A stretch of DNA of 64,000 bases from Utricularia gibba (taxonomy: Eukaryota; Plantae; Magnoliophyta), in contig NEEC01000014.1 in the NCBI GenBank assembly GCA_002189035.1, forward strand, positions 310,001-374,000, given 5' to 3'. Position 1 is the first letter of the stretch; each line of letters opens with the position of its first letter. The notes beneath the pieces were generated by a model. The model was given only the letters and a program-made list of their open reading frames with translations. It did not search any database and had not been told where the DNA came from. This document shows positions 1-52,446 of this stretch, one piece after another. Both the position numbers and the translations under genes were made by a program.

Positions 1-442
1 TTCTATTTCCCAATCCATCCACAGGGAGCCATATAACGTACTTGCATTCAAAGAGTGCACCACTAGACATGTTGATTTTGAGGGAATGAATTGTCATGTT
101 ATATAGAAATGTATATGGAGCACATCTCTTGTGTCGAGCCTCATAGCTCCGCAACTTGGAGATAAGATATAAAGAAGGTTTTCTCATCTTTGATCTTTGC
201 GTCAAGAGTAAATCATACCTACTATAGCAAGAAGGTCGATCGAATCCACTTGGAAGGAGGTCGGCTTGATGTTGGACTTGATAACTGCCCTCGTTAGGGT
301 TATGCCCATGCTGAGCATACCTTCGTGTCATGTTGTAAAGAAATGCCAAGATCGTCCCAAAAAGTAGAAAAAAGAAAACAAGTTTCAACCAATGTCTGCT
401 AGATTGTGTCAGTAACATCTTGAATGGTGTTTGGCGTTCCAT
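1..442 (-). CDS. FUT: GT37 alpha-1,2-fucosyltransferase (FUT family), 5' part; continues beyond the left window edge
   Basis: Open frame from ATG at 442 (GCCATGG context) to position 1: MERQTPFKMLLTQSSRHWLKLVFFFLLFGTILAFLY (type II membrane anchor)...LLPSGFDRPSCYSRY...KPSLYLISKLRSYEARHKRCAPYT...ECKYVIWLPVDGLGNR. These match GT37 hallmark motifs (GFDExSCxSRY, YLISKLRxYE, CKYVVW...GLGNR). Missed by the ORF track because no stop lies inside the window. Confidence 0.92.
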   Translation of the reverse strand, partial: MERQTPFKMLLTQSSRHWLKLVFFFLLFGTILAFLYNMTRRYAQHGHNPNEGSYQVQHQADLLPSGFDRPSCYSRYDLLLTQRSKMRKPSLYLISKLRSYEARHKRCAPYTFLYNMTIHSLKINMSSGALFECKYVIWLPVDGLGNR

Positions 443-1539
443 GGCCTGAACTTCAGATTACCTTCACTCGCACGTAGGATAATGTCAATGGAGATGGATA
501 ATTTATGATGAAGACATCATTGCACGAGATGAAAACCAGAGTTGAGCATACGCTATAATCGAATATGCAACATGAATCTTGAGGTTTCAAAGATTTTTAA
601 ACTATTCAAATCCATGCATACTCTTTGCCACAGCCCCCATCCTTAAGGCACTCTATAGATTCACCAAACATTGTACAATAATAGGCGTGCCAATCCACAT
701 TCGATTTTGCATTATATTATTTTATTACCTATGGTCAAATATTTCATGGTCGTCACAGTTTTGACCATAATGTAATTGAAGTGGAATAAGGTTGTGTACA
801 TTTTATTGAGTCGGCCCACATAGGCACGTTGTGTACGATTGGCTTAATTGTGCTTTTATTATTATTATTTTCTAAAGAATCATAAAACCAAAATTTGCTA
901 TTATTTTTTTATATTATTGTGATTTTTTAGCTTTTGTTTCCCACTTGTGTGACCATGTATCTGTGGGGGTGTACGTATTATCCAAAAAAATTCGAGAAGT
1001 CTGCAATAGATGAGATTTCTACACCCAAGGCACAAACCCAAATATTTCAGAATATATATTTGATATATAATAACATCCAAATATATCAGTACTTTATATG
1101 GATCTTATTTACTGAATCTATCTTCAAGATATAAGAGAATCCACCTTTGTCATTGTTGAAGGCTTCATACGTCCACATAGGATTATTGGGGAGACCCTTT
1201 GGAGGATAATTTTAGGAGTTAGGGAGGAACTTTTATCTCTTTGTTTCTACACGATCTATATTTGTAACACTGTATTTGATTCTATGATCTTTTTTTCTGG
1301 TTGTTTTGTTAAATTTATTCATCTTGTTCTAGTGAAATAATTTATCTAGCGTGTTTAGCGTCCATAACTTTTCCTTTGGATTTCAGAGTCACCAAAGTAT
1401 GTCCTTTGTCTTCATGTGTCTTCCAATCACTACACGCATCCATCCATCATCATAATCAAATTTGAACAGCTAGCTTATCGCTTTACATGGGAATACTATT
1501 TTCTACGATCCCTTAAAAGGGATTCCTAATGGATCTTAA

Positions 1540-1684
1540 CAAGTGCTATAAATAGCTCGTTTTCCTCATGAGATATGCATTCCCAAAAGCACAATAAGCA
1601 TTATGAAAATTGGGAATGCAAGATGATTTCGATAAACCGCTGTCACAGTTTGATGCTTCAGGGTGAGTATTATTTGGTTATGAG
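1540..1684 (+). pseudogene. Unidentified decayed gene start (TATA + short reading frame), split by the outer Copia; continues at 12563-12623
   Basis: CTATAAATAG at ~1549, then MQDDFDKPLSQFDASG*VLFGY|ESSILEGTAVAKRMVSA across the insertion. An uninterrupted paralog lies at ~36600-36790. Confidence 0.35.
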
Positions 1685-49233: not shown

Positions 49234-49776
49234 ATGGCTCATACAAACCTTGTTCTGTCCACTCCATTGTCCCTCTGGATGGTCATTCTGTTTGTCACGG
49301 CCATGGCGCCGGCATCCGCCAACGCCCCATCGGGGTTCTTCGGATTGAGCGTAACCACCAACGTGTGTTGTAACAGTAACGGGAACTGTAATCCCGGTAC
49401 TACAACCCCTCCTCTTGTCAACCAACCTGTAAGCCTTATTTGTAAGGCAGCAATACCACTCCCAACGTTTCCGCCACCGACAACACCACCGCCAACGACC
49501 GTTGTGGTGGCCACAGGGTCAACCGGTACCACCGGAACCGCTACCTTCACATTGACCCCAAATTTTTTCACCAATGCTGCTGGGTTTCTCATTCCAGTGA
49601 TACCTTGTTGGCTGTCCATCCAACTTCCAGCAGCTGGCTGTCCAAACCTGATTAGTGTGTTTCCTTTTCTAAAAGCAAAACTAGTTCTCATTCCGAATCT
49701 TGTTCCTCCACCAGCACTACCAGCGGCAGGTACTGTTCTCAATGCGAACGCATCGAATTGGGAATTCTCACCATAA
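49234..49776 (+). CDS. Secreted phylloplanin/Ole e 1-like protein with a Pro/Thr-rich insert
   Basis: Signal peptide; Cys pattern CCNSNGNC...PPLVNQPVSLIC...GTATFTL...CWLSIQLPAAGC parallels phylloplanin (CSxNG...PNAxVQLxC...CxLVVxTPLSxC); TATA CTTATAAATAG at ~49177. Confidence 0.72.
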   Translation: MAHTNLVLSTPLSLWMVILFVTAMAPASANAPSGFFGLSVTTNVCCNSNGNCNPGTTTPPLVNQPVSLICKAAIPLPTFPPPTTPPPTTVVVATGSTGTTGTATFTLTPNFFTNAAGFLIPVIPCWLSIQLPAAGCPNLISVFPFLKAKLVLIPNLVPPPALPAAGTVLNANASNWEFSP

Positions 49777-51623
49777 ATAACAATGACGACAAATGGGCGT
49801 TTGTCTTCTACGAATCCCCCGACACATGCTCAAGTATCTTCTCCTATGTTATGTAATCCACAATAAACAGTCCTCAAGTGTAATAAGGTGCTGTCACTTA
49901 ACCCAGTTGTGCTCATGCAATAATCCCTTGGACTGCATATGAGTGTCTTTTCCTCCGTTTATGTAAGAGTTGAATGAATGAAGTCTATGCAAAAATTACA
50001 CTGCTGTTCTTATTCTGCATGTTCAGTTTGGGCAATTTTGCACGTACAAATATCCACATATGCGACATCGAATGCAACCACCCCGAACGCCAATCCCCAC
50101 CTCTTAGGATATCACCAACTTTAGGGTTATTGAAATAAAAAATAAAGCTATTAAAATGCTATGCATAGAATAATAAGCCCCTATTTTTAGCTTCAGGACA
50201 TACTGGAGTTGTGTAAGGATTAGTTTTCTTACAAACTGGTTTTATTGCATAAAGAAGCTGACTCAACCAAACTCAAAACAATGTCTTTTTTATAACTATA
50301 AATTCGTGTTTTTCGTTCAAAAGATAAAATATTTAGAAGTGGTGGTTATGGAGATTCTGATTTAAATTAAAGAAGAAGAAGAAGAAATGCATCTCTTGGT
50401 GGGCATCAGATAAAATTGGAACAATATACAAAAGATTAGCCTGGCCCGAATGTAATGCTGATGCCCATAATGAAGCCAATTGTTTTTAAGAGAAGGGCAT
50501 CTCTTGATTTATTTTGTTTGGCTTTGTGCGATAAAAACCCAAAACACCCAAGGATCATAATTTGAGGGATTAAAACCATTTTTTGTGAGTGATAAGTGTT
50601 GCAAGAAAATCTTTTAATGCACAAAGCGGAAGAGAATGTGTTCTCTTATTTCACACACTAATAGCAGAGTATGGGAGTGTTTATATAGATACGCTAAACA
50701 TCAAGTCTTGTCCAGACTGAAACTATCAAATAACCACAAATAACTATCTAAAATCGCACCCCCCCCCCCATCCTATTACAGGTTCTTCAGAGGCATCATG
50801 AACCTACGTTGGATGTTGGTTGGCTTGAGGTGTGGGTTCCAACAATAAATTGGAACCCACATGATTCTCACATGATTCACATGAAGTGAGTGCATCTCTC
50901 TTTGGAAGTGTATTCGTATCGGGAATGTGAAGGTCTTTCGATATCAATTTATGACCTCTATTGCTTAATTTTCTTTATTATATATTTTAAACATATTTAT
51001 ATTTTTTGGGAAATCATTTTATGTATATATGTGTATTATAAAAATAATTAAAAAAAATCATGAAAGGCAGTCCCCCCATTAATTTAGGTAAATGTTCAAC
51101 TCTATCCAAGAATTAAGGTAAAATAATAATATATAATCAATCAGGGTAATAAGAAAGTAAAAAAAAAAACGGCGGTGGGCATCGAAGAGCTTGCTTGATC
51201 ATAGCACGGCAAGGGCACAACCGCAGTAGCAGATGAGGACGGGGGATGCTGCCGTGAACATGTGTGTTCAGGTAGTACGGAAGGAAGAGAAGAGAATACC
51301 TGAATTTTCATTGTAAGAGAAAGAGTGTAAGAACGGGTACAATTATTACAATCCTGTAGTACAGTTATCTCGATGCATGAGGAAGCAGCATGATGAATGT
51401 AGAATCCTAATTACCTGCTAAGCCCCATGGTTTCAGAAGATTATCTCTGCGCAACCGTATCACTACGGCAATAACCTCACCTAACAGTACGGTTAATGGT
51501 TGTGACAGCTTTTCAAATTCCAGGAACGATGCACGTCTCCTTCTATAGAATAGTGGGTGTGGCAAATGACGAAAGGAAACTGCAAGTTGGGATATCAACG
51601 AGTTCCTAATCTTCCGTTAAACC

Positions 51624-52446
51624 ATGAAGTGTCCACTGATGATGATGGCGGTGGTGATCATGGCGGTTACGGCGGCTCTCTCCATTAACGTTGCTGCAAG
51701 GATCGAGCGCCAACGAATCATATCAGGTGCGTTTTTTGTTTTTGGGGCAAGTTCGCAGGGGTGATGAGAAACCCACCACGTCTTTAATAAGTGGAAAAGA
51801 GTGTATGCTAACTTCTAAGAACTTTAAGCCGCCAAAGCCTGATTCATCAAATCTAAATGGTAAGAAAATACGTCTTCAATTTAAAGAAGAATCTCTTTTA
51901 GAAAAAAACATTGAAAACAAACAAGATAGAAATGTAGAGTGAAGTCGTGAACGATTCAGTGTCACGTTCCAAAGAATGGTTGGATGCAGCAATATGTAGG
52001 GGAAATCTTGTGAACTTGAGCTCCGATATATTCAACTGTGGGAGATGCAACAATAGGTGCGCGATCGGGAGCTTCTGTTGTGGCGGAGAGTGTGTGAATC
52101 CCGGAACTCCACAAATCACTGCCGCCCAGGGAGTGGCAGGTGCTCCAAGACGTGCCCCGTCGGGACCATCTGTCGCAACGGGTGGTGCGTCAGTCTGCTG
52201 ACCTCGCAGTCCAAATCGGGTCGCTGCCTTAACTCCTGTCCCAGCGGGAGCATTTGCTGTAGTGGGTTCTGTGTGGACGCCAGTTTCTCGCGACGCAACT
52301 GCGGCAGATGCGGCAATGTGTGCCGCTACGGCTCCATCTGTTGTAATGGAACCTGCGTCAATATGATGAACGATCCAAACCACTGCGGGCAGTGCAATCT
52401 GGTCTGTTCGACAGCATGCGTCCTTGGAACGTGCGACTACGCCTGA
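51624..52446 (+). CDS. STIG1-like secreted Cys-rich protein with five repeats; 1-bp frameshift, 5' structure uncertain
   Basis: Signal peptide from ATG 51624; repeats of CCxGxCVN...NCGxCxxxC; canonical STIG1 end CVLGTCDYA*. Adding one C at 52100-52102 joins ORFs 51947 and 52057. Confidence 0.78.

Follow-up and report, generated by a model that had tools for sequence, protein, structure and literature searches.

A lineage-specific block of glycan-enzyme genes in Utricularia gibba with a possible joint role in decorating a secreted glycan

When genes for unrelated glycan enzymes lie next to one another in a plant genome, do their products act on one glycan, or have the genes simply come to rest together? 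The question is raised by a 52-kb segment of Utricularia gibba (Lamiales), in which four unrelated families of membrane-anchored glycan enzymes occur within 47 kb. The segment forms the left part of the window, by which we mean the whole 64,000-nucleotide stretch analyzed (contig NEEC01000014.1, positions 310,001 to 374,000).

Enzyme Genes of the Block

Profile searches, translations and a structure match placed GT37, GT77, Methyltransf_24 and NXPE-like PC-esterase genes side by side, so that at least three non-homologous biosynthetic enzyme genes are adjacent, as in plant biosynthetic gene clusters. The enzyme genes are as follows.

2..442, minus strand: 5′ part of a GT37 fucosyltransferase gene (PF03254 XG_FTase match and open frame)
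14596..16194, plus strand: probable RGXT-type GT77 gene encoding 313 aa, with five exons at 14596-14978, 15121-15164, 15316-15434, 15725-15872 and 15947-16194 (RNA contig, Atlas, weak PF03407 match)
22104..23227, minus strand: type II Methyltransf_24 gene with two exons, 23227-22530 and 22235-22104 (PF13578 match and RNA splicing)
26173..27861, plus strand: PCE1, an intronless NXPE-like PC-esterase gene encoding 562 aa (homologues, motifs, structure match)
45369..47057, plus strand: PCE2, an intronless tandem copy of PCE1, also encoding 562 aa (97% amino acid identity to PCE1)

All four enzyme types begin with a short tail followed by one hydrophobic helix, an arrangement that, as read from the sequence, fits type II anchors. 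The GT37 gene continues past the left edge of the window. Positions 2-457 of the minus strand matched PF03254 (E 7.5e-27) in its N-terminal part only (8-115 of 475 profile positions). Counted from the start codon at 442, ~147 residues are inside the window, comprising a signal anchor and the first quarter of the catalytic domain; the other three quarters are beyond the edge.

For the GT77 gene, all four introns, with GT..AG borders, were removed in one RNA contig, and the protein has a DVD motif. The last-exon ORF alone scored 19.4 bits against PF03407, under the 22-bit cut-off, and the Atlas cluster nearest to this exon was MGP4/RGXT (0.98). Identity to a canonical-looking RGXT-type relative (L011) was 55-71% (~60%). 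The protein is without ~21 residues found in L011, a deletion confirmed by RNA, and we regard the gene as probably a derived RGXT-type copy.

The methyltransferase matched PF13578 at 30.3 bits, over the 26.3 cut-off, and its intron (22236-22529) was spliced in RNA runs X1 and X2. What looks like a frameshift in this gene is a base missing from a G run of the assembly: the RNA has an extra base at 22857 that the assembly does not have at 22857/22858. Once this base is counted, the product is 276 aa long and the glycine-rich SAM motif E-I-G-S-F-L-G-G-S is regained; the DLIE.D..HDF.SAW and FGHD blocks conserved in the family alignment are retained. The structure model for this family is of the Stephania homologue rather than the window protein. 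Its nearest structure was MeT1 of Mycobacterium hassiacum (6G80/6G7D), a sugar O-methyltransferase of methylmannose polysaccharide, and it was also close to SpnH, the 4′-O-methyltransferase of spinosyn rhamnose (TM by target 0.66-0.72, identity 15-19% for the two). One relative gave a weak RMNT_CmcI match. The fold, as modeled, fits a sugar O-methyltransferase, although the plant proteins differ from these best structural matches in having a membrane anchor and stem.

PCE1 and the methyltransferase gene are arranged head to head, with 2.9 kb between them. Both PCE copies carry GDS and DxxH motifs, in columns that were invariant across 44 sequences; the score against Pfam NXPE4_C was 19.4 bits, under the 27-bit cut-off. 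The structure model of PCE1 (pTM 0.74) gave full-length Foldseek matches to NXPE1-4, with E about 1e-15 and including the filamin-like N-terminal domain, and matched CASD1 and AXY9 too. The proteins thus have the complete architecture of animal NXPE1-4 (anchor, filamin-like Ig domain, and PC-esterase domain with GDS and DxxH), while CASD1 and AXY9, from the plant TBL/AXY9 PC-esterase proteins, resemble the C-terminal domain of PCE; sequence identity to NXPE, CASD1 and AXY9 is just 11-15%. PCE1 and PCE2 are candidate glycan O-acetyltransferases. NXPE1 acts on sialic acid as a 9-O-acetyltransferase (bioRxiv 10.1101/2024.12.24.630288). A literature search for a characterized member of the plant NXPE-like family found none. 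To our knowledge, sialic acid is absent from land plants, and the acceptor of the PCE proteins would therefore have to differ from that of NXPE1 and CASD1.

Duplication and Transposons in the Window

The host genes are interspersed with Ty1/copia elements, and several duplicated or decayed sequences were found among them.

4048..9340, plus strand: Ty1/copia retrotransposon (rve and RVT_2 matches)
18675..19065, plus strand: decayed phylloplanin-like copy (tblastn, 49-60% identical to the protein encoded at 49234-49776)
37271..37348, minus strand: second GT37 5′-end fragment, a pseudogene remnant (tblastn, 81% identity over 26 aa)
39449..44368, plus strand: older Ty1/copia element (Pol_BBD, gag_pre-integrs and RVT_2 matches)

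Self-BLAST showed that the LTRs of the first element (4048-4426 and 8962-9340) are 97.6% identical, which indicates a young insertion, and that those of the older one (39449-39836 and 43978-44368) are 84.7% identical. The GT37 remnant sits in a 202-bp duplicate of 376-577 (92.6% identical, self-BLAST), and the PCE copies lie in a duplicated block (25609-28174 and 44852-47393). The decayed phylloplanin-like copy, located between the GT77 and methyltransferase genes, consists of two pieces in different frames, its N-terminus is gone, and no RNA contig for it was found in four runs. The remaining large ORFs scanned left of 52.5 kb were Ty1/copia gag-pol (rve, RVT_2, gag_pre-integrs), except that ORF 10115-10621 had no match in the Pfam search; large ORFs there beyond the Pfam-scanned ones are copia-like by eye. 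Housekeeping genes begin right after 52.5 kb. A first-pass annotation had named the host gene types of this segment and had described the layout as non-homologous, duplication-prone and transposon-rich; profile matches, RNA splicing and Atlas features bear out every one of the gene types, the RGXT and phylloplanin assignments being probable, and the segment has that layout.

PCE1 and PCE2 are young copies: overall dS is 0.072 and dN/dS 0.20, and a 270-codon tract is identical, with dS 0.14 outside it. Inside the Lamiales, the branch that carries the pair is very long (0.85), yet the copy-to-copy dN/dS is 0.20. A search with the PCE1 protein returned 485 homologues, the matches listed being eudicots, and the family appears to be eudicot-wide and no special invention of the window lineage. 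PC-esterase genes also occur in tandem elsewhere, as indicated by adjacent Lycium gene numbers. Since the family is both widespread and found in tandem in other plants, its presence in the block may be incidental.

A duplication-prone region can heap up unrelated genes, which is a point against a joint role. The window segment, with its many internal duplications and pseudogene fragments and with ordinary housekeeping genes directly beyond it, may accordingly have gathered diverging Golgi enzymes that each have their own substrate. We give this explanation, co-location without joint function, somewhat less than an even chance. Against it stands the composition of the segment. Golgi glycan enzymes make up roughly 1% of plant genes, a rough estimate, and four such unrelated families among ~7 non-transposon genes are thus unlikely to have met by chance.

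Origin of the Block

We next considered the neighborhoods of homologous genes in other plants, within 10-kb flanks. No block partners were present at six methyltransferase loci (Selaginella, Phoenix, Stephania, Bienertia and two further plants) or at the locus of a PC-esterase homologue in Sesamum. In Phoenix and Stephania, the methyltransferase homologues instead adjoin a DUF7725 gene, which suggests that the methyltransferase gene departed from its ancestral neighborhood and moved into the block; this also argues against mere co-location. The absence of block neighbors at the six methyltransferase loci indicates that the block is lineage-specific. The expectation that the block is not ancestral synteny was therefore upheld within these flanks, and assembly within a lineage is likewise characteristic of plant biosynthetic gene clusters. 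We conclude that a lineage-specific block of glycan-enzyme genes exists at this locus.

Transcription of the Block and Its Secreted Neighbors

Two genes for secreted proteins lie between PCE2 and the housekeeping genes.

49234..49776, plus strand: gene for a secreted Pro/Thr-rich protein, probably phylloplanin / Ole e 1-like, 180 aa (Atlas features)
51621..52446, plus strand: STIG1-like Cys-rich secreted protein gene (PF04885 match)

The first product had no match in Pfam, PF01190 included, and was assigned by the Atlas features "Pollen Ole e 1 allergen and extensin family" and "Phylloplanin-like" (both 0.93); it combines a signal peptide with Pro/Thr-rich stretches, and its Pro motifs are few. 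The STIG1 domain PF04885 was matched at 52057-52446 on the plus strand (E 1.8e-21). Three-frame reading of this gene gave a likely signal-peptide exon from ~51621 and an apparent change of frame within the Cys-rich domain near 52.09 kb.

Expression was scored by whether assembled contigs of a gene occurred in a few RNA runs that carry no sample labels. Runs X1 and X2 both contained transcripts of the GT77, methyltransferase and PCE1 genes, and the three were not detected in the remaining runs examined; the PCE1 copy was distinguished by a specific contig at 27568-27726. Two of the runs were picked because they contain the methyltransferase/PCE1 stretch, and this selection weakens the case for a joint role. 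Detection of three genes in the same two runs speaks against co-location without joint function, although in that explanation the shared runs would merely represent generally secretory tissue. The stretch at 48.9-52.6 kb, with the phylloplanin-like and STIG1-like genes, was represented in runs X8 and X9; X1 is not listed for this stretch. Neither X8 nor X9 contained a GT77 contig or is listed as holding the methyltransferase/PCE1 stretch. Shared expression is thus suggested for three enzyme genes, and in these runs it does not extend to the secreted neighbors.

These distributions bear on the idea that the two secreted proteins are acceptor scaffolds of the block enzymes. The signal peptide and Pro/Thr-rich stretches of the phylloplanin-like protein are in its favor, as is the decayed copy amid the enzyme genes. 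However, occurrence of the secreted pair in runs without a GT77 contig argues against co-expressed acceptors, Pro motifs are sparse, and STIG1 proteins are Cys-rich signaling peptides rather than typical glycan carriers. We therefore found no support for the neighboring proteins as substrates, and consider this improbable.

A Possible Joint Function

The alternative to mere co-location is that the enzymes work together; the catalytic activities, the glycan they would act on and the sequence of steps given here are inferred. The window would contain the right-hand end of a block assembled by repeated duplication in a Lamiales plant. Three genes would form its core: a GT37 fucosyltransferase, a GT77 xylosyltransferase of derived RGXT type, and a Methyltransf_24 enzyme whose fold resembles that of sugar O-methyltransferases; the PC-esterase pair, candidate glycan O-acetyltransferases, accompanies this core. 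Their joint role would most likely be to decorate a side chain that carries fucose on a secreted glycan: GT37 would attach Fuc, GT77 would put alpha-1,3-Xyl on it, and O-methylation and possibly O-acetylation would come next. Arabinogalactan proteins have a Xyl-Fuc cap and RG-II a 2-O-Me-Xyl-Fuc unit, and the product may be akin to one of these. In favor of a joint role are the four anchored families within 47 kb, the shared runs, the apparent relocation of the methyltransferase gene, the derived GT77, the long PC-esterase branch with its low dN/dS, and the fold matches; against it, the GT37 gene is in view only as a fragment. Such a joint Fuc-Xyl-methyl-acetyl pathway is plausible, if not quite an even bet. 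The most specific version is a duplicated and co-regulated cluster in which GT37, GT77, Methyltransf_24 and NXPE-like enzymes would equip a secreted polysaccharide or glycoprotein with a Xyl-Fuc cap that is methylated and possibly acetylated; it is tentative and on the unlikely side. If true, it would represent a plant biosynthetic gene cluster for polymer decoration and would provide first functions for two uncharacterized plant enzyme families, one acting as a sugar O-methyltransferase and the other as a new class of glycan O-acetyltransferase.

Alternatively, these may be ordinary enzymes of RG-II side chains A and B that are neighbors by chance. RG-II requires exactly these four activities; RGXT enzymes xylosylate its Fuc residues, and no O-methyl- or O-acetyltransferase of RG-II is known (PMC12168206). 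However, RG-II methylation is universal, whereas the 13 named members in the 20 best-scoring methyltransferase-family clusters came only from a charophyte, a lycophyte, a fern, monocots, Ranunculales and Caryophyllales, with no rosid or other asterid among them. The derived state of GT77, with its 21-residue deletion, and the unusually long branch of the PC-esterase pair also point away from a standard role, and we consider this explanation very improbable, slightly more so than that of the acceptor scaffolds.

Comparison With Known Systems

The joint reading has its closest parallel in the fucosylation of arabinogalactan proteins by FUT4/FUT6 (GT37), where alpha-Xyl-(1,3)-Fuc-(1,2)-Ara is found and the xylosyltransferase is unknown (PMC3965541). 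The succession of GT37 and a Fuc-directed xylosyltransferase corresponds to the pair in the block. No methylation or acetylation is described for this cap, and the 147 visible residues of GT37 are too few to assign it to FUT4/6.

RGXT1-4/MGP4 together with the other chain A and B enzymes of RG-II perform the same four chemistries (Fuc, alpha-1,3-Xyl on Fuc, O-methyl, O-acetyl), and the GT77 of the block is probably of the RGXT type. The block differs in that its GT77 is shortened and diverged and that most eudicots are missing among the named members of its methyltransferase family. We know of no linkage among the RG-II genes of Arabidopsis.

Known plant biosynthetic gene clusters (for example, the avenacin, thalianol and noscapine clusters) resemble the block in having at least three non-homologous families, in being transposon-rich, duplication-prone and lineage-specific, and perhaps in shared expression. 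Their enzymes are cytosolic or located in the ER and their products are small metabolites, whereas the block, as a candidate, encodes Golgi-type type II proteins whose product would be expected to be a polysaccharide or glycoprotein.

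Gene content of the window

The window contains a genuine, lineage-specific block of glycan-enzyme genes that makes a good source of candidates. An ORF listing, six-frame reading and Pfam scans confirmed the gene inventory of the first-pass annotation, with the GT37 fucosyltransferase gene seen as ~147 N-terminal residues only, the remainder lying to the left of the window edge.

Features of the window (coordinates, strand, description)
2-442, (-): start of the GT37 gene (PF03254, E 7.5e-27, profile positions 8-115 of 475)
4048-9340: young Ty1/copia element, LTRs 97.6% identical, accompanied by copia fragments
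14596-16194, (+): GT77 gene (RGXT-type)
18675-19065: decayed phylloplanin-like copy
22104-23227, (-): Methyltransf_24 gene (the methyltransferase)
26173-27861, (+): PCE1, NXPE-like PC-esterase gene
37271-37348, (-): GT37 pseudogene fragment, 26 residues
39449-44368: older copia element
45369-47057, (+): PCE2, NXPE-like PC-esterase gene
49234-49776, (+): phylloplanin-like gene
end at 52446, (+): STIG1-like gene
from 52.5 kb rightward: ordinary genes (zf-UBP ubiquitin hydrolase, ribosomal protein L2/L8, mitochondrial carrier; Pfam)

Scattered duplicates within the window (376-577 with 37270-37471, and 17122-17875 with 37569-38309) suggest that an older unit of ~20 kb, comprising the GT37 start, a spacer, a phylloplanin-like gene and a PC-esterase, was duplicated and later rearranged. 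A likely signal-peptide exon of the STIG1-like gene begins near 51621. The gene has two good Cys-rich motifs, and between them, at 52080-52100, the frame shifts, owing either to an assembly error like the probable one in the methyltransferase gene (see below) or to the gene being a real pseudogene. Two open frames are without a Pfam match: a 169-aa ORF at 59073-59582, flanked by the ubiquitin hydrolase gene on one side and the ribosomal protein gene on the other, whose N-terminus is rich in Ser and which has a single hydrophobic helix, and a 192-aa frame (63424-63999) that runs past the right edge and may be the beginning of a further gene. Nothing was found in the window by Rfam or tRNA scanning.

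Structure and relationships of the enzyme genes

A search for RNA runs with the same species label returned 7-9. In one of these, X1, a single 1006-nt contig spans five exons and four GT..AG introns of the GT77 gene (region 13500-19499), and three of the exon junctions are also backed by a second run, X2. The 313-aa product has a signal anchor and a DVD motif, and the Atlas sequence cluster nearest to its last exon is MGP4, a UDP-Xyl:Fuc alpha-1,3-xylosyltransferase (0.98). On Logan contig L011 lies an RGXT gene of canonical appearance, which shares 55-71% identity with the window gene, exon by exon. Relative to L011, the window protein lacks ~21 residues (the K-P-L-D-H-S-H-D-L-P-P-P-G-K-K segment) directly upstream of the C-S-C-x-I-Y-L-R-P-T block, an absence backed by an RNA junction (15434-15725). 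Because of this loss and its divergence from L011, we consider the gene a putative derived RGXT-type copy, the comparison being with L011 and the Atlas. Loss of the segment may have altered the acceptor site. The idea that this GT77 represents a rare subfamily, based on its few matches, was dropped, as L011 is a canonical-looking RGXT gene whose own first-exon ORF happened to suit the length filter. A 585-aa intronless ORF adjoining a GT77 gene in L008/L009, considered as a possible PC-esterase or GT37, proved to encode a BAG/IQ protein.

Removal of the methyltransferase intron (22236-22529) is seen in contigs of both X1 and X2 (region 22000-27999). The X1 contig also has one additional base after 22857, in a G run on the coding strand (22857-22861; 4 G in the assembly, 5 G in the RNA). 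Since this base restores a continuous frame of 276 aa with the motif E-I-G-S-F-L-G-G-S, the frameshift is most simply explained as an assembly error in a homopolymer, an allele being the alternative, and such errors are suggested at other places in this genome assembly. A contig from X3, a run of another study, covers window positions 22582-23038 with a 96% identical variant (17 base changes, 6 amino-acid changes) that has the family-typical G-A-S at the motif spot; its source is either a divergent allele or a second, paralogous copy that is also expressed.

For the methyltransferase, an exhaustive HMMER search of 1.84 billion representatives, with the in-frame 110 residues as query, yielded no more than 22 clusters with E 1e-10 or better. 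Among the 20 best-scoring of these 22, the 13 named members are from Stephania, Phoenix, Ananas, Psilotum, Selaginella, Bienertia, Carnegiea and the charophyte Mesotaenium. The family is old in streptophytes and has been retained patchily, and its patchy spread argues against a role as the universal RG-II enzyme. Every full-length member combines an anchor and a stem with conserved blocks, which the window protein keeps. PDB sequence searches with the methyltransferase query gave nothing useful. The Stephania member, rather than the window protein, was modelled with AlphaFold (pLDDT 82, pTM 0.72); the structure nearest to the model was Mycobacterium hassiacum MeT1, which O-methylates sugars in methylmannose polysaccharide synthesis, with the rhamnosyl 4'-O-methyltransferase SpnH close; both ranked ahead of catechol/CCoAOMT-type enzymes. 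One relative has a weak RMNT_CmcI match. Judging from the modelled fold, it is reasonable to infer that the methyltransferase may act as a glycan O-methyltransferase.

The PC-esterase family comprises 485 homologues by protein search, of which those listed are from eudicots with no Pfam domain recorded, and the G-D-S and D-x-x-H columns are unchanged across 44 sequences. A PDB sequence search found a weak filamin repeat only. The structural model (pTM 0.74) has a filamin-like N-terminal domain and a C-terminal domain resembling CASD1, AXY9, Cas1 and PC-esterase-domain proteins, and it matches animal NXPE1-4 over the full length (E about 1e-15). NXPE1 is a sialic acid 9-O-acetyltransferase with mucin as substrate (bioRxiv 10.1101/2024.12.24.630288); our literature search found nothing on the plant NXPE-like family. 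In the tree, PCE1 and PCE2 fall inside Lamiales, branching after Oleaceae, with their position relative to Genlisea unresolved; their stem, at 0.85 substitutions per site, far exceeds every other branch. The two copies differ by a dS of 0.072 with dN/dS 0.20. Since their central 270 codons are identical (26764-27573 in PCE1, 45960-46769 in PCE2) while dS is 0.14 outside this tract, the tandem copies have likely undergone gene conversion.

Linkage in other plants

The first-pass annotation had raised synteny with relatives as a check on the cluster, and the linkage proved not to be ancestral. At six methyltransferase loci (Selaginella, Phoenix, Stephania, Bienertia and two further plants), no GT77, GT37 or PC-esterase gene was found within 10 kb of the homologue, and the partner genes were likewise absent from the Sesamum PC-esterase locus. 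The neighbours of GT77 at a Helianthus locus (L007) and on Logan contigs were unrelated. In both Phoenix (L003, a palm) and Stephania (L004, Ranunculales), the methyltransferase homologue adjoins a DUF7725 gene, a conserved microsynteny that the window gene has left; the DUF7725-adjacent site is probably its old position.

One pathway or chance neighbours

The fucosyl-, xylosyl-, methyl- and acyltransferases had been read in the first-pass annotation as a sequential glycan pathway. Contigs of GT77, the methyltransferase and PCE1 are present in both X1 and X2, and the PCE1 contig (27568-27726) agrees with PCE1 at 12/12 sites that distinguish it from PCE2. Together with the head-to-head arrangement of the methyltransferase and PCE1 (2.9 kb between them), the non-ancestral linkage and the occurrence of four unrelated Golgi-type glycan-enzyme families among ~7 non-transposon genes, this is consistent with a shared pathway for the enzyme core (GT37, GT77, methyltransferase, PC-esterase), which we put forward tentatively, at somewhat less than an even chance. 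Alternatively, the genes may be co-located with no joint function, a possibility of about equal weight: the segment is visibly duplication-prone, the PC-esterase family is widespread and occurs in tandem in other plants too, and the expression support consists of contig presence in unlabelled samples, X1 and X2 having been picked via the methyltransferase/PCE1 stretch. The concentration of four unrelated families in so few genes speaks against co-location alone.

The further proposal that the neighbouring phylloplanin-like and STIG1-like proteins are the acceptor scaffolds of these enzymes gained no support and appears improbable, because their stretch occurs in other runs (X8 and X9, weakly X2, with X1 not listed), whereas GT77, the methyltransferase and PCE1 are found in X1 and X2. 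No GT77 contig was found in X8 or X9 (same study), and neither is on the list of runs with the methyltransferase/PCE1 stretch, which also counts in favour of the enzyme core as a cluster.

Comparison with known glycans and clusters

The plant gene clusters known so far make small metabolites, not decorations of wall or secreted glycans, and our literature search found no published plant GT37/GT77 gene cluster. In this block a predicted fucosyltransferase and a predicted xylosyltransferase acting on Fuc stand beside members of two uncharacterised families, one with a predicted sugar-O-methyltransferase-like fold and the other O-acetyltransferase-related. The block thus offers concrete, cheap candidates for missing activities that remain useful even if the block is only loosely functional. 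RG-II contains 2-O-Me-Xyl-Fuc and acetylated 2-O-Me-Fuc units. No O-methyl- or O-acetyltransferase of RG-II has been identified, nor have the enzymes that place methyl and acetyl groups on the Fuc and Xyl of RG-II and related glycans (PMC12168206). Arabinogalactan proteins carry alpha-Xyl-(1,3)-Fuc-(1,2)-Ara, and the xylosyltransferase of this Xyl-Fuc cap is also unidentified (PMC3965541). The chemistry proposed in the first-pass annotation agrees with both this Xyl-Fuc-Ara structure and the 2-O-Me-Xyl-Fuc and acetylated 2-O-Me-Fuc of RG-II.
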